This document shows positions 13,823-51,292 of a stretch of 64,000 nucleotides of DNA, piece after piece. The DNA lies in IMG/VR virus record IMGVR_UViG_3300032116_000001, positions 1 through 64,000 of that record. One strand, given 5' to 3'. The translations under genes and the position numbers were made by a program. Every line of letters begins with the position of its first letter. The stretch's first letter is position 1. Below the pieces are notes generated by a model. That model had not been told where the DNA came from. It did no database searches and saw only the letters and a program-made list of their open reading frames with translations.

Positions 13823-14434
13823 ATGACTTACATTGTTAAGCCTTTGTGGGAAATCATGGTCCCCTATGTTATGGGCGATCATGATGGAACAAATCCTGAT
13901 TTACCGAAAAGAAATCGCAACATTCCCGTTCCCTATCATCAAGAATGGGATGAGTTTGTTCGCAATGTGACAGGCGGCTTAACGATTCATCGCGCTGCTC
14001 GTGGTCAGTGGGAAGATCGTGACGGAAAACTTTACAAGGAAATTATGATTCCTGTGCGGATTGCTTGCACACAAGAGCAGATCGCGGAAATCGCGGAATT
14101 TACAATTCAGCATTACAAGCAGAAGGCAGTTTTCGTTACCCTTGTTAGCGAAAAGACTCTGATCTTTTATGCCGATGGTGAAGCTCCTGAGCCAGACCCC
14201 AACACTATCGTTGCCGTGGCGTTTTACTGGGATGACTTGGAAGATATTGGTGGTTGGTGCTCCGATCTCAGTAAGGAAAGCCTCGATTATGAACGCAAAG
14301 AGTCCCCTGGCTTACGCTTCAAGCCCATCTATGCCAGCGATAAAGGACGATGGGAAAACGACATGGAAGATTGGACGTCAGATTGGATAAATGAGCTTTG
14401 CTCTCGTCCTTTTGTATTTGATAAAAATGATTAA
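13823..14434 (+). CDS. hypothetical phage protein
   Basis: LWEIMVP...WDEFVRNVTGGLTI...GQW...MIPVRIAC...HYKQKAV. Confidence 0.7.
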   Translation: MTYIVKPLWEIMVPYVMGDHDGTNPDLPKRNRNIPVPYHQEWDEFVRNVTGGLTIHRAARGQWEDRDGKLYKEIMIPVRIACTQEQIAEIAEFTIQHYKQKAVFVTLVSEKTLIFYADGEAPEPDPNTIVAVAFYWDDLEDIGGWCSDLSKESLDYERKESPGLRFKPIYASDKGRWENDMEDWTSDWINELCSRPFVFDKND

Positions 14435-14909
14435 GCCTCAGAAACCAAGTGCCCGATTAGGATGGATAGCGCCGAATGGTGATTGGTATCCATGCGCTTA
14501 TACTGCTCATCGACATTTAGCCTCGATCATTGGGCAGAATCTATTCCCAGACACATACTTTCATGACGAACTTCTTTTAGAGCAAAATGGATGGGTTTCT
14601 GTTCGATCTGGTGGCATGATTAGTAATGGCAAAATGATCACGCCCGATCAGATGAATACATTAAGGCTAATCGTGGAAGAATTTGAATACATGGAAAGTG
14701 AAAATCCTAATATAAGTTGGGATGAAGAACTCTGTCGTAATCCAGAACTATATTTTCGCGTCCGCTGTTTCACTATGCCAACAGAAGGCATGAAGGCCAG
14801 CTTTGCCAAAACACTACGATCACGATTTGATTACTTATCGGGGAATGATCATTCCTTGGTTGAAGAATCAAGATTGTCACGAAGAAATAACGTTCATCCA
14901 GGGGATTAA
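14427..14909 (+). CDS. hypothetical phage protein
   Basis: GWIAPNGDWYPC...H...LEQNGWV motif. Confidence 0.7.
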   Translation: MIKPQKPSARLGWIAPNGDWYPCAYTAHRHLASIIGQNLFPDTYFHDELLLEQNGWVSVRSGGMISNGKMITPDQMNTLRLIVEEFEYMESENPNISWDEELCRNPELYFRVRCFTMPTEGMKASFAKTLRSRFDYLSGNDHSLVEESRLSRRNNVHPGD

Positions 14910-20397: not shown

Positions 20398-20698
20398 CGG
20401 GGCGTGGCGAAATGGCAGACGCAGGGGACTTATAAAATGAGCACTTGTTTGTGAAAGCTGCAAGTGAATGCAATCAAATTCGGTGAAACCTTAACAGTTA
20501 GGCTGATGGCAATACCGAGCCAAGCTAACTCAAAACAGAGTTAGAAGGTGTAGAGACTAGATGGTTGCTGCCTAAGTCGAAAGATATGGCAAAGGTATAG
20601 TCCAGACCACAAAATCCTTTGGGATCGTAGTGAAAGCTATAGTGGTATGAAAATCCCTTAGTAGCAATACTGTGTGGGTTCGAGTCCCACCGCCCCGA
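20398..20698 (+). tRNA. tRNA-Leu (TAA) interrupted by a group I intron
   Basis: Exons 20398-20431 and 20650-20698; joining them restores GGGGA-CTT^AAAA-TCCCT. Confidence 0.92.
20432..20649 (+). mobile_element. group I intron (tRNA-Leu UAA type, IC3-like), 218 nt, no ORF
   Basis: Inserted after the U of the anticodon, ends in G; P AAATTCGGTGAAA, Q AATACCGAGC, R GTAGAGACTAGATGG, S AAGGTATAGTCC. Confidence 0.9.
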
Positions 20699-24128: not shown

Positions 24129-24545
24129 ATGGCAATAACAAAATACAAAGGAGCCGTCGGGCTAACTAATGTAATGGCCTGTCTTGTCAATCAAAAAGCA
24201 AAAATCTTTGTTCCAATAGACGAAGACTGTCAATATGACCTGGTGGTAGATTATCAAAATTATCTTTACAGAGTGCAAGTTAAATATGCTGAGGCAAAAA
24301 ATGGCAAGATCGTTGTAAAGACGCGCTCAACGAATAACTATTGTGAAATTCGTTATACTAAAGATCATTTTGACGTGATTGCTGTTTGGGACAATGTTGG
24401 CAAAAAAGCATATTTTATTTCATCGAATTTAATCACAGAAGGAATGACGGAAATGACCTTGAGATTAGATGCACCAAAAAACAATCAAACTAAAAACATA
24501 AGATTGGCTCGTAATTATGAGCAATTTAATGCTGCGGTCGCATAG
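24129..24545 (+). CDS. PD-(D/E)XK homing endonuclease (I-Ssp6803I/PDDEXK_5-like)
   Basis: YDLVVD...RVQVK...YTKDHFD...LRLDAPKNNQ. Confidence 0.85.
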   Translation: MAITKYKGAVGLTNVMACLVNQKAKIFVPIDEDCQYDLVVDYQNYLYRVQVKYAEAKNGKIVVKTRSTNNYCEIRYTKDHFDVIAVWDNVGKKAYFISSNLITEGMTEMTLRLDAPKNNQTKNIRLARNYEQFNAAVA

Positions 24546-24613
24546 TGGTCGATTGCACCTCTCTTGTAAAGAGGAACTCCACACCGTGGGTTCGAATCCC
24601 ACCCGTAGCTCCA
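24531..24613 (+). tRNA. tRNA-Thr (TGT)
   Basis: GCTGCGG/CCGTAGC-TCCA; CCTCT-CTTGTAA-AGAGG; overlaps the endonuclease stop. Confidence 0.9.
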
Positions 24614-39020: not shown

Positions 39021-39917
39021 ATGAGTAGAGTAAAGAGAGTTATTGATAATGGTCTGGTATCGAAAAACTCAGTGCCAAAGCACTTCCCCGATTCGATTCA
39101 ATACGAGACGATCATGGGAAGTGTGGCCTACGGAGTGTCTTCTGATACGTCGGATATGGATATTTATGGATTTTGTATCCCGCCCAAGCACATTGTCTTT
39201 CCTCACTTAGCGGGACATATCCCTGGCTTTGGTCAACAGCCTGAGAAATTCGAGCAATGGTCGGTGCATCATATCAAAGATGAAGAAAAAAATACCGAGT
39301 ACGATTTTTGCATTTACAATATCGTCAAGTATTTTAGTTTGGTTATGGAAAACAATCCCAACATGGTGGATTCTCTTTTCACTCCACAAAACGCGATTTT
39401 GCACTGCTCTCCAATCGCTCAAATGGTGCGTGACGAACGTCATATCTTCTTGCATAAGGGAGCGTGGCACAAGTTCAAGGGCTATGCCTACTCGCAGATG
39501 CACAAAATTCGATCAAAGGAGGCTCCGCAAGGCAAGCGAAAAGAGCTGGTGGAACAGTTTGGATTCGACGTGAAGTTTGCTTATCATGTTGTAAGATTGA
39601 TTGACGAAGTTGAGCAAATTCTTGTTGAGGGCACTCTTGATCTTCAAAGAAATCGAGAACAGCTTAAATCTATTCGGAGAGGTGAATGGACTTTAGAGGA
39701 AATCGAGGAATACTTTACTCGTCGAGAAAAAGAACTTGAGCTGGCTTATGCTAACTCAAAGCTGCCTCACACGCCCGATGAAAAGCGAATCCGCCAGCTT
39801 TTGATGAATTGCCTTGAGCATCATTACGGAAACCTATCAGACGCCGTAGTGGATGTTGACGCGGCCACGAGAACACTTCAGCAAGTTGCGCATCTAATTC
39901 GACAAGGGGGATTCTAA
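39021..39917 (+). CDS. DNA polymerase beta-superfamily nucleotidyltransferase (YcgL-like)
   Basis: GSVAYGVSSDTSDMDIYG; NPNMVDSL; DVKFAYHVVRL. Confidence 0.88.
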   Translation: MSRVKRVIDNGLVSKNSVPKHFPDSIQYETIMGSVAYGVSSDTSDMDIYGFCIPPKHIVFPHLAGHIPGFGQQPEKFEQWSVHHIKDEEKNTEYDFCIYNIVKYFSLVMENNPNMVDSLFTPQNAILHCSPIAQMVRDERHIFLHKGAWHKFKGYAYSQMHKIRSKEAPQGKRKELVEQFGFDVKFAYHVVRLIDEVEQILVEGTLDLQRNREQLKSIRRGEWTLEEIEEYFTRREKELELAYANSKLPHTPDEKRIRQLLMNCLEHHYGNLSDAVVDVDAATRTLQQVAHLIRQGGF

Positions 39918-39957
39918 AAATCCCCCGTTTTTTCTTTTTTGATCAATATATAATTCC

Positions 39958-40308
39958 GTGAGCATCAACAGATTGCAGCTATCACCATCGGTTCTCGAAA
40001 AGCTCGATTCTCTAATTAATCGAGCTAAGGAAATTGAGAAGAACGCTCCTGATGACTATGACGAAAATGGAGTCATCATTGATTTTTTGGGAGACAACAC
40101 AAAGACCAAGGCCCAATCAGCGATCAGTTTTTTCCGCGATTCTATTACAGAACGAGCAACACGCCTTTCTGAAAATCTTGTTGAAGCTATTGAGCAACAG
40201 GTTCCGCAATTACCAGATCATCCTCTTGAAGCCTTTGATATCGCGAATCAACCCAAAAGCCCAATGAGAAACATGATGATTCGGAATGAAATTGATCTTC
40301 TTGATTGA
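39958..40308 (+). CDS. hypothetical protein
   Basis: GTG start after the promoter motif. Confidence 0.65.
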   Translation: MSINRLQLSPSVLEKLDSLINRAKEIEKNAPDDYDENGVIIDFLGDNTKTKAQSAISFFRDSITERATRLSENLVEAIEQQVPQLPDHPLEAFDIANQPKSPMRNMMIRNEIDLLD

Positions 40309-40351
40309 TAAAATTCCCCTTTGTTTTTGAATCCAATCGGATATATAAGAA

Positions 40352-40708
40352 GTGAAGTTCAATCAAGAAGCGCCTGGTGAATTTGTTTCGTCCTGTGGCA
40401 ATTGGTGCATTCAAGCATCCAATTCTAAGTTCCGCGCATTTAAGGTTTTCACTCAAATCAACCTTGGGCCTTTTGACACTTTTGAATTAGCAGTCGCGGG
40501 CATCGGCGATTATGACCCCAGCACTTGCAGCCGCGATGAAGAATTCGATGTTGATGACCGTGTGCAAGTTCCCGCGCCCGTAGAGGGCGATTTGCACAAT
40601 CATGAATTTGTTGGTACAATTGTGGGTTTTCGTGAAGATTATGCCCAGGTCGAAGATATGGAAGGTAATGTTTTCGATATTGAACCATGCAGACTCGAAA
40701 AGATTTAG
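40352..40708 (+). CDS. hypothetical protein (SH3-like C-terminus)
   Basis: GTG start after the promoter motif. Confidence 0.7.
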   Translation: MKFNQEAPGEFVSSCGNWCIQASNSKFRAFKVFTQINLGPFDTFELAVAGIGDYDPSTCSRDEEFDVDDRVQVPAPVEGDLHNHEFVGTIVGFREDYAQVEDMEGNVFDIEPCRLEKI

Positions 40709-40753
40709 TCAAAAAATCCCCTTAGTTCATGGTGCAAAAATCATATATTAAGG

Positions 40754-41065
40754 GTGGACAAGCGAGAACCCAGTAACCTTTTTGACGCTTTTAGCATTTG
40801 TGCAGAAATTATTAAGCAAATGCTAGCAGGACGTTCGACTGCCGAAATCATCGACAGCATTGACGTGAATGAAGAACATCTTGCCAACATTGCCGCCGAC
40901 ATGATTGTTGTTTGTGGGTTGAATAATGATTTGGCGATGGTTCTTAATGATGGAGAAACTTACACAAACATCTCAGGGTGTTCTATTCGGCAAATGACCG
41001 AAGAGTTTGACGAAGATGGGGAGTTCGTTGAAGATACGTTCGGTGACCCTATCATCGTAATGTGA
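40754..41065 (+). CDS. hypothetical protein
   Basis: GTG start after the promoter motif. Confidence 0.65.
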   Translation: MDKREPSNLFDAFSICAEIIKQMLAGRSTAEIIDSIDVNEEHLANIAADMIVVCGLNNDLAMVLNDGETYTNISGCSIRQMTEEFDEDGEFVEDTFGDPIIVM

Positions 41066-41188
41066 GTAAATTGACAGGAAACTAATCGGGGCAATGAAGC
41101 CCTGATTTTTTATAACTTTCTACGATTGTGCGGCACGATCATTATAAAAATCCCCCTTATTAATCGGCTCAATTTACTATAATGATAT

Positions 41189-41527
41189 ATGTACCACGTA
41201 GACGATTGCGTTATCGGAAAAGAAATTGCAAGTCAGGCTGAATATCATATCAATGTTTATGACTATGACGTTCGGTTATGTTCCGATGGCTGTTGCATTG
41301 AGGCGCGGACGGCAGCTGAACTTTGGAGCAACGACTGTAAAACTTTTCTAACCGAAGATGTGGATGGGTTTTGCAATAGTGGCGAGGCCGCTCAGAAGGT
41401 AATCAATTTGGCCAAGGCGCGTGGCCTCAATGTTCATCGAGGTAATACGGCGATCTATGTGGACGGCGATAGAGATTGTTCTAACGAATTGATTTACGGA
41501 TTGAAAAAATTTCCCCTAGATTACTGA
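41189..41527 (+). CDS. hypothetical protein
   Basis: Promoter-like motif upstream. Confidence 0.65.
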   Translation: MYHVDDCVIGKEIASQAEYHINVYDYDVRLCSDGCCIEARTAAELWSNDCKTFLTEDVDGFCNSGEAAQKVINLAKARGLNVHRGNTAIYVDGDRDCSNELIYGLKKFPLDY

Positions 41528-41551
41528 GACAAGAGGCATATATAAACTACC

Positions 41552-42292
41552 ATGACAATCGAACACGATAACATCGAAGAGCGAGTTGGAAAGGGAACTT
41601 TAATTCGTATTTCCAAGCTGCTTACCATGGCGAAGGATAAGCGCACGAACGAGAATGAAGCCCATAGCGCTATGCAATCGGCTCTTGCGCTTTTGTCTCG
41701 GTATAACATTACGGCTTCTGATGTTGAGAATTCGGGCATTTTCGAGGAAGCAGTGGGTTCTGAATCTTTTAATCCAACTGAAAATCGAAATCACTCCACA
41801 TGGCGATCCCAGCTAATCAATTCCATCGCAAGCACTCACTTCTGTCATGTCTATCGACGAAACGGGGGCGAGTTTATTCTGACTGGTAAGGAAACTAATC
41901 GTGCCGCCGCGATGATGCTTTTTCAGTATCTTTCCGTCGTGATTGAAGAAAATGCCCTTCAGGCTGTCCGCGAATACGACGGATGGGAATCGAAAAAGAC
42001 TTATGGCAATGCCTATCGGCTTGGAATGGTGACTCGAATTAATGAACGACTTATTGACCAAAAGCGCCAAATTATTCAAGAGGCTTCATCCAATAACACT
42101 GAAATTGTTGCTGTCAATCCTTATGAACAGGCCGAAAAAGAAAATCAAGCCTATGTCAAATCGAAGGGCGTAAAACTGTCGTCACACGCCTCAAGCAGTA
42201 ATCTTGGAAGTGGCGCGGGTTGGCATCGAGGGCGCAAAGATGGCGAGCGCGTTGGGCTTACCGCTGGGCGAGCACTAGGATATAAAAAGTGA
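41552..42292 (+). CDS. DUF2786 domain protein
   Basis: RISKLLTMA...NENEAHSAMQSALALLSRYNI; AYRLGMV; GWHRGRKDG. Confidence 0.8.
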   Translation: MTIEHDNIEERVGKGTLIRISKLLTMAKDKRTNENEAHSAMQSALALLSRYNITASDVENSGIFEEAVGSESFNPTENRNHSTWRSQLINSIASTHFCHVYRRNGGEFILTGKETNRAAAMMLFQYLSVVIEENALQAVREYDGWESKKTYGNAYRLGMVTRINERLIDQKRQIIQEASSNNTEIVAVNPYEQAEKENQAYVKSKGVKLSSHASSSNLGSGAGWHRGRKDGERVGLTAGRALGYKK

Positions 42293-42717
42293 GAGATACG
42301 CAAAAAGCCAAATTTTACAAATTCGAGGACTATATCATCAAGCGATTCCTCCAAAAAGAACTACATGATGGACTTGAATTTCGAGAAATCGAAGGGCTTG
42401 TTGGAAGAATCTGCCATTCTTATAATGTCCGCCCGCCAAAGATAAAGGTCGGTCGGCAGAATTCGAGCAAAGCCTACTACAAAACGATTGACCATAGTAT
42501 CACGCTTCCGCCATGGGCTCAGAGAACATGGACGGTAGTCCATGAAACAGCTCATGCAATTACTTATGGGAAAGGATATAAGGACCCTGGGCACGATGGT
42601 GATTTTGTTGGAGTATGGGTAGAGCTTTTTTCAAGAATGTATGACATCCCCAAGGAAACTCTTGAGTCGGAAGTTAAGCTGGCGGGATTGAGATATGTCA
42701 AATTTTCCCCCAAATAA
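42289..42717 (+). CDS. SprT-like HExxH zinc metallopeptidase
   Basis: ITLPPWA...VVHETAH...GHDGDF. Confidence 0.75.
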   Translation: MRDTQKAKFYKFEDYIIKRFLQKELHDGLEFREIEGLVGRICHSYNVRPPKIKVGRQNSSKAYYKTIDHSITLPPWAQRTWTVVHETAHAITYGKGYKDPGHDGDFVGVWVELFSRMYDIPKETLESEVKLAGLRYVKFSPK

Positions 42718-42742
42718 ATCAGAAAGAAATCATATATAAGAC

Positions 42743-42958
42743 ATGAACACCAAGCAAAATCAGGTCGCAGATGACATTTATAATCGGCTTTCCAGTTCCG
42801 CGCCTGGGTTTTATCGATATTGGTCTGATACGGTTGACCGATCAGTGGCCCAAGCACTAATCAAAAAGGGACCATTTTTCAGTTACGGCAATTCTTGGCG
42901 ATTCAAGGCCGAAAGTCTCGGGGCTGGAATGTATCGTGTCAAGATCATTGAAGCCTAG
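42743..42958 (+). CDS. hypothetical protein
   Basis: Promoter motif upstream. Confidence 0.65.
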   Translation: MNTKQNQVADDIYNRLSSSAPGFYRYWSDTVDRSVAQALIKKGPFFSYGNSWRFKAESLGAGMYRVKIIEA

Positions 42959-43029
42959 TCCCGATCAGGCCATCTTCATAAAAATCCCTTATTTTTATCG
43001 TTTCGATTCGATATAAAAAGGGAGGCTAA

Positions 43030-43482
43030 ATGATTACCCTTTTCAAGTTCGAGACCGAAGATGACGGCACGATTATCATTCCGATGGAGAAAATCGGAGT
43101 CACTATCAAGGACCTACAAGATGCCTTCAAGGAGGCAAAAGAACACGCCCAAGACGAATATGATGTAGAGCTGACCAAAGACACGATTTTCACAGTCGAA
43201 GAAGTCCACGGCCTGAAAGATTTTCTTGAGAAATACACTCTAATCGAGCGTCCGACGGCGAAGGCTGGCAAACCGTTCTCTAAAGCCGTTTTTGACCCTG
43301 ATTTGCATACCCTTCCCGAAGTTGCAGACCAGAACCAAGTCTGGACCTGGACCGATTGTGATGATGGCGGAAGTTATCTGATTCAAGGATACCATCATGC
43401 CAATCGCTTGGGCTATATCTTTACTGAAAACAAAGATGGAGAACCAGTGCCGATTGATGGAAACTCCTACTTTGTAGACTAG
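43030..43482 (+). CDS. hypothetical phage protein
   Basis: GGAGG SD; VWT...GYHHANRLGY. Confidence 0.7.
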   Translation: MITLFKFETEDDGTIIIPMEKIGVTIKDLQDAFKEAKEHAQDEYDVELTKDTIFTVEEVHGLKDFLEKYTLIERPTAKAGKPFSKAVFDPDLHTLPEVADQNQVWTWTDCDDGGSYLIQGYHHANRLGYIFTENKDGEPVPIDGNSYFVD

Positions 43483-43850
43483 GTGACTGGGAACAAGAAA
43501 GGGGGAAGTAACTCCCTCTTTCTTTATGACTTTCCGTGATTATGCGCCACGATCATTAAAAATCCCCTATATCTTATATTCCAATCGGATATATAAGATA
43601 TAATGAAAACCAAACATGTTTTTCGAGTTTACCCCAAGAATGCAACATCTTCCGAGGATGCTTTGGTAATTGAGAAAACCATAAGCCCGAAATCTGTCCT
43701 TCGAGTAATGGGAAACCTTCTTGGCAAGTATAATGCTTCAGAAGTGGCTTTATTGAAATCCGAGGACAAATAAGACTTTTTTAACAAAAAGTCCCAAAAT
43801 CATAGGACGATTTTGTTTTTTGATCGTATAATAGATAAGGACACTTTATT

Positions 43851-43943
43851 ATGAAGACCCACACCACATCAAATACGAATATGGTCTTCACCCGACGCAA
43901 TTCCGCGACGGGCGTCCAACAACGCTGTCGGCGTTCCGCTTAA
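43851..43943 (+). CDS. Gln/Arg/Cys leader peptide MKTHTTSNTNMVFTRRNSATGVQQRCRRSA
   Basis: AAGGAC SD; CAA CAA CGC TGT CGG CGT codon run; upstream of tRNA-Gln x2, tRNA-Arg x2 and tRNA-Cys. Confidence 0.75.
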   Translation: MKTHTTSNTNMVFTRRNSATGVQQRCRRSA

Positions 43944-44032
43944 GTCGGGCTGACACGTTACCACCTGCAAGTAACTTCTTTTTCGAAGAATTAGCCCGCT
44001 CTCTGAGCGAGACGTCGATTATCATCTCGTGC

Positions 44033-44106
44033 TCGGGGATCGTCTAGAGGCAGGACTCTGGTCTCTGGAACCAGAAGCGGTGGTTCGAATCCATCTCTCC
44101 GAGCCA
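44033..44106 (+). tRNA. tRNA-Gln (CTG)
   Basis: TCGGGGA/TCTCCGA-GCCA; CTGGT-CTCTGGA-ACCAG. Confidence 0.93.
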
Positions 44107-44113
44107 GCTTCAC

Positions 44114-44199
44114 TGGGTCTTAGGCGAATTGGTAGAGCCGCCTGTCTTTGGAACAGGACTCCTGAAAAGGTGGAGGTTCGAATCCTCCCGACCCAGCCA
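44114..44199 (+). tRNA. tRNA-Gln (TTG) with enlarged variable arm
   Basis: CCTGT-CTTTGGA-ACAGG; GCCA end. Confidence 0.88.
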
Positions 44200-44271
44200 A
44201 TTAAAGGCTTTATGCATTTTGAAAAAATAATTAAAAAAGGCTTTCTTAACAGAAGTACATAATTAAAACGA

Positions 44272-45057
44272 GTGATTCAAACTTCCAATAAGAAAACAAG
44301 AGTAAAGCGCAGTCGAATTTGGACGATGCCTAAAGACGAGTTCGCTCAACTAGTGGCCTCAAGTCAAACTTATGTCGAAATTCTCCGAGCCATTAACTAC
44401 ACCATACGAGGAGGAGCTTTTCGAATTTTAAAAGAACGAATTGCGACAGAAATGATCGACGATTCACATATATTAAAGAATGGAAGGCAAACCATTTATG
44501 CCCATAGATTCAATACTCGGTCAGATGACGATATATTTTGCGAAAATTCTACATACAATAGTGGCCCTGCCCTGAAAAAGAGAATGATTAAGCTAGGCTT
44601 ACCTGAAGAATGCACAAAATGTGGGCTTGGTGCAACATGGAATGATGAACCTCTATCTCTGCAAGTAGACCATATCAATGGGGTGCGCAACGATAACAGA
44701 TTAGAGAATTTGAGGCTTCTGTGCCCAAATTGTCATTCTCAAACCGAAAATTTTGCTGGCAGAAAGTTGAACGCAAAAAACAAATCATGTCCAGAATGCT
44801 GCGCTAAGATCAGTGGATACCGTAAAGATCAGAGATGCCAATCTTGTGCCAATAAGATCAGGTCTAGAGAAATGCAACTAATATCAAAACCATCAAAAGA
44901 CGAGCTTCAAGATATGTTGTGGAAAATGCCCGCGACTAGGATTGCTAAGATATACAATGTGTCCGATAAAACAGTTGGTAATTGGGCTAAATCCTACAAA
45001 ATTGACAAACCGAGCCGTGGACACTGGGTCAAAAAAAATACTCCCCCCCCCTTGTAG
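44272..45057 (+). CDS. HNH homing endonuclease with C-terminal zinc-finger/HTH
   Basis: LQVDHINGVRNDNRLENLRLLCPNCHSQT; ATRIAKIYNVSDKTVGNW. Confidence 0.9.
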   Translation: MIQTSNKKTRVKRSRIWTMPKDEFAQLVASSQTYVEILRAINYTIRGGAFRILKERIATEMIDDSHILKNGRQTIYAHRFNTRSDDDIFCENSTYNSGPALKKRMIKLGLPEECTKCGLGATWNDEPLSLQVDHINGVRNDNRLENLRLLCPNCHSQTENFAGRKLNAKNKSCPECCAKISGYRKDQRCQSCANKIRSREMQLISKPSKDELQDMLWKMPATRIAKIYNVSDKTVGNWAKSYKIDKPSRGHWVKKNTPPPL

Positions 45058-45123
45058 CTTAATGGATAGAGCGCAGCACTTCGGATGCTGATGTTATGGG
45101 TTCGAGTCCTATCGAGGGGGCCA
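45048..45123 (+). tRNA. tRNA-Arg (TCG)
   Basis: CAGCA-CTTCGGA-TGCTG; overlaps the HNH stop. Confidence 0.9.
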
Positions 45124-45134
45124 AAATTTAAAAC

Positions 45135-45210
45135 ACGCCTGTAGCTCAGTGGATAGAGCATCAGCTTGCGGAGCTGAGGGTCGGAGGTTCGAACCCTCTC
45201 AGGCGTGCCA
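45135..45210 (+). tRNA. tRNA-Arg (GCG)
   Basis: TCAGC-TTGCGGA-GCTGA; GCCA end. Confidence 0.92.
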
Positions 45211-45216
45211 ATATAC

Positions 45217-45291
45217 GGCCACGTACCCAAATGGTTAAGGGCTCCCTCTGCAAAAGGGATGTTGCGAGTTCGATTCTCGCCGTGGCCTCCA
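45217..45291 (+). tRNA. tRNA-Cys (GCA)
   Basis: GGCCACG/CGTGGCC-TCCA; U73 discriminator. Confidence 0.95.
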
Positions 45292-45335
45292 AAAATCCCC
45301 TATATTTTTGTCACAATCGGATATATAGTTAGAGA

Positions 45336-45902
45336 ATGACCCAGATTCAAATCGAAGCCGCGAAGCAAATGAAAAAGGCCTGCTATCGGAGTCGCGGGAC
45401 CTTAATCAAAGCAATTCTGGCTTATGTCGAATACCTGATGCGATGTTCGGATTGCCCGCGCAATTGGCCCAAGCACAATCAAGTGAACGTTTCTGCCGAA
45501 ACTCTAAAGTCTCTTGCGTGGCTTTACGGCAATTATCATACTGCGGTTTTAGGACAGAAGTTAAACAACCTTCAGTTTTGGATTGAAGAAAGTGGTCGTC
45601 AAATCCCGAGCGAATCTATCGAAGACTATCATGTAAACTCTCTTGACAATAGGATGCTTACCCGAAGAGAGATTTGGGCTGGTGAGATTTTGAGTCACTT
45701 GGTTTTTGCGATTGTCTTTCCCGAAGAAATGGCTCAGACGGGGCTGACTGCTGATGGAATGAATCAAAGATTCGCGGAACTTGATTATGATTTTAACTTG
45801 GTGCTTGAAGATGCTTCAGAAGGCTACGGGACGATTTGCGCATGGATGTCTAAATCAACATCGGTTGAAGTCTTGCGAGACATCTGGCACTTAAACAAGT
45901 AA
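45336..45902 (+). CDS. hypothetical protein
   Basis: Promoter motif; terminator at 45910-45942. Confidence 0.7.
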   Translation: MTQIQIEAAKQMKKACYRSRGTLIKAILAYVEYLMRCSDCPRNWPKHNQVNVSAETLKSLAWLYGNYHTAVLGQKLNNLQFWIEESGRQIPSESIEDYHVNSLDNRMLTRREIWAGEILSHLVFAIVFPEEMAQTGLTADGMNQRFAELDYDFNLVLEDASEGYGTICAWMSKSTSVEVLRDIWHLNK

Positions 45903-46021
45903 GTTGATAAAAATACCCCTGTCCACCAAGGGGTATTTTTTATTACTTTCTACGATTATGGTTCACGATCATTATAAAAAATCCCCTGTTTTCGAGAAAT
46001 CAAAACAATATATAAAATAGA

Positions 46022-46261
46022 ATGTTGATTCAAGTGTATGACAGTCTTGACGGCAATTATGTCGGCGGCATCTACAAAGTCACTCGCAATGATGGCGGAG
46101 ACCAATCGCAACACCAATTCATTGATGCTTGGGCTCGTGCTGTGGAACAAGCGAAAAGCATTGGAGAGGATTGGGGAGAAGATGACATTTTCGAGGCTCT
46201 GAAAGAGTTTGGTTGGGAAGTCGTGCTTCCAGCCATTGACATTTTGCCAGTACAATACTAA
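46022..46261 (+). CDS. hypothetical protein
   Basis: Promoter motif upstream. Confidence 0.65.
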   Translation: MLIQVYDSLDGNYVGGIYKVTRNDGGDQSQHQFIDAWARAVEQAKSIGEDWGEDDIFEALKEFGWEVVLPAIDILPVQY

Positions 46262-46262
46262 A

Positions 46263-46592
46263 ATGACCGCAAAACAAGCAAAAGAAATTCAACAAGAAGT
46301 CATTGTGAAGCAAAACAATGATAACGCAAGCATCATCGACAATCTTCTTGAAAAGGGTATTTTTAAGAAGATTGAAGACGCGGCTAGGGATGGTAGAAAT
46401 TCAACTCGTATTGGGCGTCCTTACCACGATACTGGTTTTGAAACTCCAGAATTCCGTTGTGGCGACTTTAGCCTAAATTATGTTTTGGGCTTCATTGACA
46501 ACAATGCGATGCGCGAGATTATCATTCAAAAACTCAAAAACCTGGGATATACTGTGTCTGTTGAGGCCTCTAGTTTGATAATTGAGTGGTAA
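46263..46592 (+). CDS. hypothetical phage protein
   Basis: IEDAARDGRN...LKNLGYTV...IEW. Confidence 0.7.
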   Translation: MTAKQAKEIQQEVIVKQNNDNASIIDNLLEKGIFKKIEDAARDGRNSTRIGRPYHDTGFETPEFRCGDFSLNYVLGFIDNNAMREIIIQKLKNLGYTVSVEASSLIIEW

Positions 46593-46640
46593 AAATCCTT
46601 TCTTTTCATTGATGCAATCGGATATATGATTTAGGTCACG

Positions 46641-46925
46641 ATGAGAAACGAAGACGCCTCTAGCATTAATTTTGACATTGATAAGCCCTTTCATGTATTT
46701 ATTTGCGATGGATGTCGGGAGGCTGGCCCGTATACTCAATATGGCATAAGTCATCTTGACGCTGCTGGTCGCTTTGCAGAACGATGGAACAAGAATCTTA
46801 TGTCATGCTCTAAATCGCATTATGGCTATGGGAAACAATGGGAGGAAGCCCCCCGTAAACCTGAACAGTACGCAAACCATCACTATTTCCAAGACGAGCG
46901 AGGCAACAAACTCTTGATTATCTAA
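46641..46925 (+). CDS. hypothetical protein (Lar-like CxxC...WN motif)
   Basis: CDGCREAGP...AERWN. Confidence 0.55.
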   Translation: MRNEDASSINFDIDKPFHVFICDGCREAGPYTQYGISHLDAAGRFAERWNKNLMSCSKSHYGYGKQWEEAPRKPEQYANHHYFQDERGNKLLII

Positions 46926-47019
46926 CCAAGAGTTTGTTGCAATATAATTATTTTTCACGACAAAATGATCGTGCCGCATAACCATAGAAAGTTATAAAAA
47001 AGAAGGGGGCAGTGCCCCC

Positions 47020-47706
47020 TTAGTGTTTGAGAAAAGCAATATCTTTCTTATGCTTGGGATTGAAGCACAGACGACAGGCCGCGCAATTTGTTTTCTTATC
47101 ACTTCCTTTATGAAGTGCCAAGTCATAAGGGCAAAGAGTCGTATTATCGTCCTGGTCTGCAATCGTATCAATGACTTGCGCGGTTCGGAATCCGTTATCC
47201 TTCGCAATCTTGCGCTCAATCGGAGACTCTACAGAGGCCACAATATGTAGGTTTTCGGGGAAACTTCCCTTGGCATAACTGAAGCCCGCCGCAATCATAC
47301 AACGCACGTCATGAGTATACGTCCATACCGTCACGTCGGGATTCTGCTTGCACCATTCAATAACTTCCGTTAGATACGGCACGTCTAGCGCATGAACACC
47401 GTTCCCGTCAGAAGTAAAGAAGTCGCCAGAAGTATGCAAACGAACCAATCTGGCACCTTTTGAAGTCAGGCGGTCAAGGTCATCATGCCGCGCCGCAGAC
47501 TTTTTTTGTTGCTGATTTACAAGAAACTTCCGAGTGTAACACCCTCCGCCCTTACTCGGCAAGTGAGGACAGGTGCCAGGACAGGTGCCTTCACCCTTGC
47601 CAGCATCCCCGACAGGGCGATAAGTCGTCGCCACCTTATTGAGTTTATCCTTGGGGTCGCTCAGTTTGGAGTTCTGCGACCAAGGAGAAATCAAAGTCGT
47701 GTTCAT
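47020..47706 (-). CDS. gene product 88-like (radical-SAM-related Fe-S) protein
   Basis: NSKL; TCPGTCP...CY; VRLHTSGDF; WTYT; CP...CAACRLC...IAFLKH. Confidence 0.75.
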   Translation of the reverse strand: MNTTLISPWSQNSKLSDPKDKLNKVATTYRPVGDAGKGEGTCPGTCPHLPSKGGGCYTRKFLVNQQQKKSAARHDDLDRLTSKGARLVRLHTSGDFFTSDGNGVHALDVPYLTEVIEWCKQNPDVTVWTYTHDVRCMIAAGFSYAKGSFPENLHIVASVESPIERKIAKDNGFRTAQVIDTIADQDDNTTLCPYDLALHKGSDKKTNCAACRLCFNPKHKKDIAFLKH

Positions 47707-48394: not shown

Positions 48395-48474
48395 GGGGCA
48401 AATAGCTCAGTAAAGACATATGGGAATGTAACAGTAGAGGTTTCCGCGTATGTTCAAATCCTGTTGCTCCACCA
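48395..48474 (+). ncRNA. tRNA-Ala-like mini RNA lacking an anticodon arm
   Basis: GGGGCAA/TTGCTCC-ACCA with G3:U70; own promoter. Confidence 0.55.
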
Positions 48475-50906: not shown

Positions 50907-50960
50907 ACTTGACAATCGGAAAAATCCCCCTTTTCCACTAACACAATCGGATATATAAGC

Positions 50961-51064
50961 AGGTGTCCAGGGGGCGGTGAAAGTCCGCAAGGCGGCTGCA
51001 GAGTCATGAATCTGCAGTGCGGCTGGTTTCCTCTGCGCTTGCGCAAGACCACCCTGGCGAGCCT
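50961..51064 (+). ncRNA. GC-rich structured RNA / 5' leader
   Basis: CCAGGG/CCCTGG, GCGG/CCGC, CTGCAGA/TCTGCAG and TGCGC/GCGCA helices directly after a promoter. Confidence 0.5.
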
Positions 51065-51079
51065 TCACAAGAGAGAAAT

Positions 51080-51292
51080 ATGCACGAGTTTGGTATAACT
51101 TTCCAAAACATCCATGGCGAAACATATGACAGCCCCGAATATGTTGGTCTTACGCTGCCGTTTCGCCCAAATGTTGGTGATGAAATCCTGATTGTGGGGG
51201 CAGGAGGAAAATCCTACAGAGTCTTGAAAGTTGAATATTGCGCTGGGCCATCGTTTGGTGACTTTCTTCTCACCGTCGAACCCGTGGTGTAA
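51080..51292 (+). CDS. hypothetical protein
   Basis: LPFRPNVGDEI. Confidence 0.6.
   Translation: MHEFGITFQNIHGETYDSPEYVGLTLPFRPNVGDEILIVGAGGKSYRVLKVEYCAGPSFGDFLLTVEPVV

Follow-up and report, generated by a model that had tools for sequence, protein, structure and literature searches.

A conserved leader with a small open reading frame of cognate codons precedes a set of phage tRNA genes

In an uncultured giant phage, five tRNA genes for Gln, Arg and Cys are preceded by a folded RNA leader of about 190 bases, and this leader contains a short open reading frame (ORF) ending in a cluster of Gln, Arg and Cys codons. This suggests, but does not prove, that the phage gauges its own tRNA supply by the way in which ribosomes read the leader. 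The locus lies in a 64,000-nucleotide stretch of DNA (the window; positions 1 to 64,000 of IMG/VR record IMGVR_UViG_3300032116_000001). A preliminary description, made from the sequence alone, interpreted it as a leader peptide coupled to a non-canonical RNA switch.

The leader ORF and the tRNA unit

The observation itself proved correct. The ORF spans 43851-43943 on the plus strand, with an ATG at 43851 and a TAA at 43941-43943. It comprises 30 codons, carries CGA CGC at codons 15-16 and ends CAA CAA CGC TGT CGG CGT TCC GCT TAA. ARAGORN and Rfam place tRNA-Gln(CTG) at 44033-44106, tRNA-Gln(TTG) at 44114-44199, tRNA-Arg(TCG) at 45048-45123, tRNA-Arg(GCG) at 45135-45210 and tRNA-Cys(GCA) at 45217-45291, all on the plus strand. 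An HNH homing-endonuclease ORF (44272-45057; Pfam HNH and PHROG 10822 at 1e-47) is inserted in the tRNA unit and is not part of the regulatory element.

The six codons for Gln-Gln-Arg-Cys-Arg-Arg (43917-43934) form the only run of six or more codons from the set CAA, CAG, CGN, TGT and TGC in the window, on either strand and in any frame. Second-order Markov simulations give 0.16 such runs per 64 kb. However, the same spot gives a 5-codon run on the minus strand, so that the local CG-rich composition contributes, and the locus was picked because of its codon match, which entails a look-elsewhere effect. The preliminary description had pointed to the use of all four CGN codons, but since 88% of the phage's Arg codons are CGN, this choice adds no evidence. 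None of the nine other tRNA sites in the window has a comparable upstream ORF.

A putative sigma-70-like promoter of the tRNA unit, which had been overlooked, lies at 43776-43832. It consists of an A/T-rich hairpin and A-tracts, a -35-like AGGACG (43804-43809), a 17-nt spacer and a -10 TATAAT (43827-43832). A simple promoter scan did not list it, because its -35 matches at only 3 of 6 positions. A boxA-like TTTAACAA at 43783-43790 is not conserved in the relatives. Further upstream, a small ORF of 56 aa (43603-43773, plus strand) without Pfam or PHROG hit lies behind a phage promoter motif at 43556-43602. No phage promoter motif lies between 43561 and 45294, so all five tRNAs can depend on this leader; the next motif starts at 45289.

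Conservation in distant lineages

To find out whether the leader is conserved, we searched for relatives. About 20 contigs from other metagenomes are 99.85-100% identical over 39030-47482 and 100% identical in 43483-45335, and give no information. A 95-96% lineage (18,835-bp contig, JGI 3300059473 / GCA_041445565.1) did not appear in the metagenome, GTDB or IMG/VR scans. Its gene table, the only part used, shows a gap of 1053 nt against 1853 nt, so it lacks the HNH gene. A neighbour protein only 52-58% identical led to three distant syntenic phage lineages, here named L025, L027 and L030, which carry the same tRNA set; the HNH gene is absent in L025.

Each of the three has a homologous 29-codon ORF (L025, 8904-8993; L027, 13696-13785; L030, 6940-7029). 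Start and stop positions are kept, there is one in-frame 3-nt indel, and a block ATGVQQRCRR is invariant. Loss of the ORF in relatives with the same tRNA set had been named beforehand as grounds for abandoning the idea; instead, the ORF is conserved in every relative found that carries this set. A 27-nt core (43908-43934) that includes the six cognate codons is invariant except for two third-codon positions (CAA/CAG and CGC/CGT), and a regular expression for it matches the window, L025, L027 and L030 only. In codons 13-28, variable sites by codon position are 2/1/6, and pairwise synonymous:nonsynonymous counts are 21:9 in the ORF frame, against 3:26 and 7:24 in the other frames. The N-terminal 12 codons, by contrast, show no such periodicity (8/8/6). 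All three frames are nearly stop-free here, so that an open frame alone is weak evidence.

The putative promoter has the same layout in L025 (AGGACA-17-TAGAAT) and L027 (AGGACA-17-TAGAAC), while the -35 is degenerate in L030. ORFs of 47-49 aa, homologous to the small upstream ORF, lie just upstream of the leader in all three.

IMG/VR was scanned with a fully degenerate TGVQQRCRR pattern, a pattern for two leader helices (H2 and P1, see below), the phage tRNA-Cys, the tRNA-Gln 5' half and a DUF2786 profile, each of which returned only the window's own contig or an unrelated locus. The GTDB pattern scan gave nine chance hits in bacterial genes with no tRNAs nearby. A 46%-identical DUF2786 lineage (L047/L048) has neither the tRNAs nor the motif nearby, and GenBank phages gave only tRNA-level matches. 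The evidence rests on four lineages only, which fall into two pairs.

Two alternative folds of the leader

The leader is also predicted to be a conserved structure. In its 5' domain, not noticed previously, a Shine-Dalgarno-like AAGGA (43837-43842) precedes the ATG by 9 nt, and a GGA lies 6-9 nt before the AUG in all four lineages. GGAC (43839-43842) forms the 5' strand of a closing helix, P1, and pairs with GUCC at 43914-43917; the sixth P1 pair is C-G, U-A or U-G in the relatives. Helix H1 (43852-43890; UGAAGACC/GGUCUUCA) holds the start codon and has a C/A-rich loop. It is kept in all four lineages, with a C-G to U-A change in L025. Hairpin H2 (43891-43912; CCCGaCGC/GCGaCGGG) lies inside the ORF and shows one compensatory C-G to A-U change in L030. 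This domain thus sequesters the ribosome-binding site and the AUG, although its covariation is not significant on its own (73 of 500 shuffles).

All helices of the preliminary description were found at the positions given. These are TGTCGGC (43926-43932) with GCTGACA (43949-43955), the mutually exclusive CGGGCTGA (43946-43953) with TTAGCCCG (43991-43998), a weak hairpin of GTTAC (43957-61) and GTAAC (43971-75) followed by TTCTTTTT, and GAGCGAGA (44006-13) with TCTCGTGCTC (44026-35), which overlaps the 5' end of tRNA-Gln. What had been missed is that the minimum-energy fold pairs GUCGGCGUU (43927-35) with GACGUCGAU (44011-19). This helix 1:4 closes one long three-way hairpin at 43927-44019 (state Y, domain B), which also contains a stop-codon helix (43937-44 with 44001-09) and helix 2:3 (43946-53 with 43991-98). 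The Cys-Arg-Arg codons and the stop codon lie in its 5' strand. An equivalent long hairpin occurs in each relative with different sequence (z -2.7 to -4.9); the strand in the ORF is invariant, while its partner differs in every lineage.

In the alternative state X, helix 1:2 (43921-43932 with 43949-43959) forms around a mini-hairpin whose loop holds the stop codon. It is the minimum-energy fold of 3'-truncated transcripts in all four lineages (-13.0 to -20.7 kcal/mol; z -1.5 to -4.5), with two unrelated segment-2 sequences, and is replaced by the long hairpin once the 3' strand is present. UAA stays at the same codon position although its pairing context differs. The region after the stop codon is 63-89 nt long with a C/G ratio of 1.19-1.50, and the H1 loop has 10-15 C against 1-3 G.

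The interpretation in the preliminary description was thus only partly supported. The mutually exclusive pairings and the conserved ORF hold. However, the weak GTTAC hairpin with its U-run exists only in the window, and no relative has an intrinsic terminator. The helix overlapping the tRNA 5' end is not conserved either. Predicted tRNA misfolding upon masking of the leader by a ribosome is strong in the window, partial in L027, slight in L030 and absent in L025, so we rejected it as a conserved output. Rho-dependent termination, also suggested there, remains an inference.

A possible ribosome-read switch, its rivals and known systems

We propose, with a probability of about 0.45, that the segment 43838-44032 is the conserved 5' leader of a tRNA transcription unit and works as a ribosome-read RNA switch. 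In this model, the short ORF is translated once as the RNA emerges, and its last six conserved codons, which lie in segment 1 of the switch, are decoded by the very tRNAs encoded downstream. A ribosome held on these codons would keep segment 1 single-stranded. Helix 1:2 then could not form, and the downstream RNA would take a different fold than when the ribosome runs to the stop codon and leaves. The fold would set how much tRNA comes out of the unit. Our analysis establishes the ORF, the codon match, their conservation, the two alternative folds and the absence of a conserved intrinsic terminator. That the ORF is translated, that stalling is the signal, and what the output step and its sign are, we infer from sequence alone. 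The most likely output may be Rho-dependent termination or RNA processing acting on the roughly 65-90 nt that stay unfolded in the 1:2 state, and more tRNA when decoding is slow is the logical direction. The asymmetry between the invariant ORF strand and its variable partner fits an added coding constraint. On the other hand, no conserved terminator or other readable output was found, the GGA and the AUG sit in conserved helices, which could mean little or no translation, and the core is invariant at third positions too (ACG GGC GTC), so RNA-level constraint alone could produce the amino-acid conservation.

If this holds, and we suggest it only tentatively, a phage tRNA operon would sense its own need, its leader ORF reporting the cell's decoding capacity, for example after host tRNA loss or cleavage during infection, and setting tRNA output through a terminator-less switch. 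Phage tRNA genes are usually treated as constitutive codon-usage helpers or as replacements for host tRNAs lost during infection, and the control of their expression is almost unknown. Such a leader would give a direct feedback loop from decoding capacity to tRNA supply and extend leader-peptide attenuation to tRNA genes and to a design without an intrinsic terminator. Literature searches found no report of a leader peptide controlling tRNA genes, and it would be the first such attenuator found in front of them. The leader would also yield a compact, portable sensor of tRNA availability, and the element is short, conserved and easily tested with reporter fusions.

The strongest rival, although less likely, is a structured, untranslated leader or stable RNA. 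It could be a processing or folding scaffold for the tRNA precursor, an RNase III/E or RNase P determinant, or an sRNA released on tRNA maturation, with the ORF and its codon match as by-products of GC-rich helices. The two conserved domains with compensatory changes, the invariant third positions in the core, the paired SD-like motif and AUG, the lack of periodicity in the first 12 codons, the open alternative frames and the minus-strand run are in line with this view. Against it, the AUG, the GGA spacing and the UAA position are all kept although their pairing contexts differ, third-position bias favours the ORF frame in codons 13-28, the unpaired linker CAACGY between the two domains is invariant without a structural reason, the ORF-side strand is invariant while its partner is free to vary, and the six-codon match is improbable by chance.

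It is unlikely, though possible, that the ORF encodes a functional basic micropeptide (net charge about +6, arginine-rich C-terminus), such as an RNA- or ribosome-binding peptide or a nascent arrest peptide. The mRNA structure would then control the peptide's own synthesis, and the match to the tRNAs would be coincidental. A variable N-terminus with about 16 conserved C-terminal residues is the pattern of tunnel-acting arrest peptides (compare SecM, TnaC, SpeFL and the Erm leaders) and of arginine-rich RNA-binding motifs, but here it is confounded with RNA structure. The ORF-frame substitution pattern is in line with a peptide, and the small basic peptide gene tpr in the E. coli tyrT tRNA operon is a precedent. 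However, Pfam and PHROGs gave no family hit, and the exact sequence is absent from the protein collection. Nor does this reading explain the conserved alternative folds around the stop codon, or why the block uses only the three amino acids served by the operon.

A classical trp/his-type attenuator, with the GTTAC hairpin and TTCTTTTT as 3:4 terminator, is very unlikely despite the leader ORF and the 1:2/2:3 alternatives: the hairpin has 5 A/U-rich pairs and a 9-nt loop and lies inside helix 2:3 rather than after it, no terminator was called on the plus strand between 43851 and 44033, that part of the leader is unrelated in L025, L027 and L030, and no GC-rich stem plus U-tract precedes the tRNA in any of them. 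Least likely is a T-box-like riboswitch (RF00230) whose invariant, unpaired linker CAACGY pairs with anticodons without a ribosome, since, although multi-codon T-boxes exist, Rfam gave no T-box or other family hit in the leader of the window, L025 or L027 even at E up to 1-5, there is no conserved UGGN bulge to pair with the tRNA 3' end, and an AUG and a UAA frame the codons.

Among known systems, T-boxes likewise are cis-acting leaders whose logic is tied to particular tRNAs, but they bind uncharged tRNA directly through a specifier loop and the T-box bulge and need no ORF; no such motifs occur here. The phage T4 tRNA region, with stable RNAs C and D and a homing endonuclease, and the E. coli tyrT-tpr operon share with our locus a structured non-tRNA RNA and/or a tiny basic ORF co-transcribed with tRNAs, and a homing endonuclease inserted among phage tRNA genes. 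There, the RNAs and the peptide lie downstream of or between the tRNAs and have no known codon relation to them and no known switch. In the Rho-dependent leader-peptide switches (tnaC, mgtL/mgtP, corL, speFL), the ribosome position on a leader ORF decides whether a downstream stretch is folded or left open, and no intrinsic terminator is needed. Such switches have a conditionally exposed C-rich, G-poor rut region of about 70-80 nt. In our leader the post-stop region is richer in C than in G and the loops are C-rich and G-poor, but its target is a tRNA unit, and Rho dependence and a rut site would have to be inferred.

The ribosome-mediated attenuators of amino-acid operons and pheST (trpL, hisL, leuL, thrL, ilvL and pheL leaders) share with it a short ORF beginning Met-Lys, a cluster of regulatory codons near its end in segment 1, a stop codon between segments 1 and 2, mutually exclusive 1:2 and 2:3 pairings, more than one amino acid sensed (as in thrL and ilvL, and in our leader by inference) and a downstream segment that can pair with the leader's ribosome-binding site. 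Here, however, there is no 3:4 GC-rich hairpin with a U-tract, and segment 1 instead pairs with a distal segment 4 to close one long hairpin. The phage-encoded leader would regulate tRNAs rather than enzymes or synthetases, and the signal would be decoding capacity, including the tRNAs themselves, rather than amino-acid supply alone.

Genomic context of the leader ORF and the downstream tRNA genes

The window covers the first 64 kb of a 378,848-bp uncultured phage contig (IMGVR_UViG_3300032116_000001), and window and contig coordinates coincide. It has 41-46% G+C, 15 tRNA genes, an rIIA-like gene and a group I intron, the latter matched at 20421-20624 in the early region with 58.2 bits (gathering score 50). 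In GenBank, no cultured phage resembles it beyond tRNA-level matches.

The observation made in the preliminary description is confirmed, as all of its elements were found in the sequence at the stated positions. The leader ORF runs from ATG 43851 to TAA 43943 and encodes 30 residues, which end in Gln-Gln-Arg-Cys-Arg-Arg-Ser-Ala and include CGA, CGC, CGG and CGT codons. It is followed by tRNA-Gln(CTG), tRNA-Gln(TTG), an HNH endonuclease ORF, tRNA-Arg(TCG), tRNA-Arg(GCG) and tRNA-Cys(GCA). All five helices that had been proposed are present. The minimum-energy fold adds a pairing that had been missed, between 43927-35 and 44011-19, which closes a long three-way hairpin at 43927-44019 (z about -3).

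We next asked whether the codon match could have arisen by chance. Codons of the set {CAA, CAG, CGN, TGT, TGC} make up 10.8% of all triplets, and the run of six is the only run of six or more in the window, in any frame on either strand, where Markov simulations give 0.16 per 64 kb. The run lies on the right strand, in an ATG-initiated frame, about 100 nt before the cognate tRNAs. However, the minus strand gives a five-codon run at the same spot, so the local CG-rich composition contributes, and the finding was itself selected for this property. None of the other nine tRNA sites in the window has a similar upstream ORF.

The phage has more than 60 copies of its own promoter-like motif (for example at 1935, 2905, 43556-43602 and 45289-45335), which consists of AAAAATCCCC, about 20 nt, and (AATC)GGATATATAA, mostly followed by an ATG only 3-5 nt later. 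This implies mostly leaderless mRNAs. Some copies double as AAAAATCCCC...GGGGATTTTT hairpins. The relatives described below (L025, L027 and L030) use a different motif, AAAACTTTCCCTCTGATTT...CTATAA(T/G)GAT-ATG. No copy of the phage motif lies between 43561 and 45294. Instead, the leader is preceded by a sigma-70-like AGGACG-17-TATAAT with A-tracts upstream, a layout that is shared by L025 and L027 and is weaker in L030. The predicted start near 43838 puts GGAC at the 5' end of the RNA. A GC-rich 5' untranslated stretch of about 120 nt at 50960-51080, between a promoter motif and an ORF starting at 51081, is unlike the usual leaderless layout, and no Rfam family matches it. Directly behind another promoter motif, at 48395-48474, lies a tRNA-like sequence with acceptor ends GGGGCAA...TTGCTCC-A-CCA and a T-arm-like GTTCAAATC, which is called by neither ARAGORN nor Rfam. 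At 83 nt, tRNA-Thr(TGT) at 24531-24613 is longer than a standard tRNA-Thr.

Conservation of the ORF in distant lineages

About twenty contigs from other samples are essentially clonal, with 100% identity in 43483-45335. A further lineage of 95-96% identity, compared through its gene table only, lacks the HNH gene. More distant relatives were found through the DUF2786 protein encoded 1.5 kb upstream (41552-42292), which has homologues at 52-58% identity. Their contigs are syntenic and carry tRNA-Gln(CTG), tRNA-Gln(TTG), tRNA-Arg(GCG) and tRNA-Cys, although the contig of L030 ends just after the two Gln tRNAs, so that its Arg and Cys genes were not seen. This gives four distinct lineages, namely the window (W), L025 (identical to L026), L027, and L030 (identical to L029). 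A lineage with 46% identity (L047/L048) has neither the tRNAs nor the motif nearby, and scans of IMG/VR and GTDB found nothing further.

The tRNA units differ in detail. L025 (9266-9345) and L027 (14523-14602) carry aberrant tRNA-like genes with a UCG anticodon loop, no normal D arm and a long extra arm at the position of the tRNA-Arg(TCG) of the window. Rfam scores are 26.8 bits (tRNA-Sec model) and 30.4 bits (tRNA), whereas ARAGORN does not call them. At 44114-44199 in the window, 13849-14043 in L027 and 7093-7285 in L030 there are tRNA-Gln genes of 86-88 nt with a long variable arm (class II-like shape), which is unusual for tRNA-Gln. They still have U1-A72 and G73, which are Gln identity marks, and L025 has normal 74-75-nt versions. 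The HNH homing-endonuclease ORF of the window (44272-45057), located between tRNA-Gln(TTG) and tRNA-Arg(TCG), is also absent in L025, while L027 has a different minus-strand ORF at the same spot (14065-14508), so this is an insertion hot spot. The poly-C run at the junction (45036-45046) varies in length, with one extra C in the sequence L006. Immediately upstream of the leader always lies a conserved 47-56-aa ORF of unknown function (43603-43773 in the window, about 8650-8793 in L025, 13436-13585 in L027 and 6680-6829 in L030).

Each relative has a 29-codon leader ORF at the same place, encoding MKITPTTTYPIFSRRSSATGVQQRCRRTA in L025, MKNTNHTPYVIFTRRNSATGVQQRCRRTL in L027 and MKTFTNSPYVNFTRSNSATGVQQRCRRPL in L030. 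The AUG, a GGA 6-9 nt upstream and the UAA two codons after the last Arg are kept, and the window differs in length by one in-frame codon. A 27-nt core (43908-43934) is invariant except for CAA/CAG and CGC/CGT. In codons 13-28, the variable sites by codon position are 2/1/6, and pairwise differing codons are 21 synonymous to 9 nonsynonymous in the ORF frame, against 3:26 and 7:24 in the other frames. These counts should not be over-read as evidence of translation, since all three frames are nearly stop-free here, several third-position changes sit in base pairs, and only about nine variable sites are involved. The first 12 codons vary freely, with no periodicity (8/8/6). Because 88% of the Arg codons of the phage are CGN, the all-CGN choice in the leader means nothing.

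A conserved leader RNA with two predicted alternative folds

The RNA is conserved as a structure comprising two domains, as judged from thermodynamic predictions and from four lineages that fall into two pairs. In the first domain, GGAC (43839-42) pairs with GUCC (43914-17) and thereby encloses helix H1, which contains the AUG (43852-59 with 43883-90), and helix H2 (43891-98 with 43905-12). On a four-sequence alignment, 92.9% of cells pair, against 31-40% when the partners are slid. Two pairs show compensatory changes and the closing helix shows C-G, U-A and U-G, yet with four sequences this is not significant by shuffling (73 of 500). In W, a 16-nt deletion removed the UGGACA of the relatives, and an A-to-G difference, read directly from the alignment, re-creates GGAC in the preceding segment.

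The second domain is a long hairpin. Its 5' strand consists of the Cys-Arg-Arg codons, the last two codons and the stop, and its 3' strand ends 0-15 nt before the tRNA. Sequences differ almost completely between lineages, yet each folds the same way (-30 to -38.5 kcal/mol, z -2.7 to -4.9). The ORF-side strand is invariant, while the partner strand varies.

Folding of 3'-truncated transcripts shows that, before the distal strand exists, all four lineages form the 1:2 helix put forward in the preliminary description. In W, AACGcUGUCGGC pairs with GCUGACAcGUU, L025 forms a 10-bp version, and in L027/L030 G(C/U)UGUCGG pairs with CUGGCGGC. Two unrelated segment-2 sequences pair with the same invariant segment 1. 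The helix surrounds a mini-hairpin whose loop carries the stop codon (-13 to -20.7 kcal/mol, z -1.5 to -4.5). Once the 3' strand is present, the long hairpin is 5-18 kcal/mol more stable.

Possible output and relation to known attenuators

No intrinsic terminator is conserved. The GTTAC hairpin and U-run, which had been proposed as a weak terminator, are window-specific and were not called by the terminator scan. To ask whether the leader could instead act on tRNA folding, we masked ribosome-sized stretches and refolded the leader with tRNA-Gln. The acceptor-stem probability fell to 0.03-0.06 in W and 0.30 in L027, stayed at 0.64-0.82 in L030, and did not change in L025 (0.96). Sequestering the tRNA 5' end is therefore not a conserved output, and it also could not explain Arg and Cys codons in a leader that touches only tRNA-Gln. 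What remains is a mechanism acting on the whole unit. In the 1:2 state, the 63-89 nt between the stop codon and the tRNA, which are somewhat C-rich (C/G 1.2-1.5), are predicted to stay largely unfolded, whereas they are folded in the long-hairpin state. That contrast is what Rho or an endonuclease could read, although this step is inference only.

Taken together, conservation considerably strengthens the observation, and the interpretation offered for it is partly supported. A conserved leader ORF with cognate codons sits inside a conserved RNA with two predicted states, but the proposed terminator and the helix overlapping the tRNA are not conserved. We tentatively favour, with a probability of about 0.45, a ribosome-read sensor of decoding capacity that controls the tRNA unit. 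The ORF, its codon match, their conservation and the alternative folding predictions come directly from our comparison, whereas translation of the ORF, ribosome stalling and the output are inferred from sequence alone. A less likely but still possible alternative is an untranslated structural or processing leader, and a functional basic micropeptide or arrest peptide appears more doubtful still. A classical intrinsic-terminator attenuator and a T-box-like sensor are each very unlikely. Our literature searches found no report of leader-peptide control of tRNA genes.

The geometry of the leader matches that of trp-type attenuators, with the regulatory codons forming segment 1. From established footprint sizes, a ribosome at the stop codon would cover segment 2, while a ribosome stalled on the cognate codons would leave it free, a point that is again inferred. 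The leader nevertheless fails one defining feature of classical attenuators, the 3:4 terminator, and should therefore be described as working like such an attenuator rather than as a member of that class.
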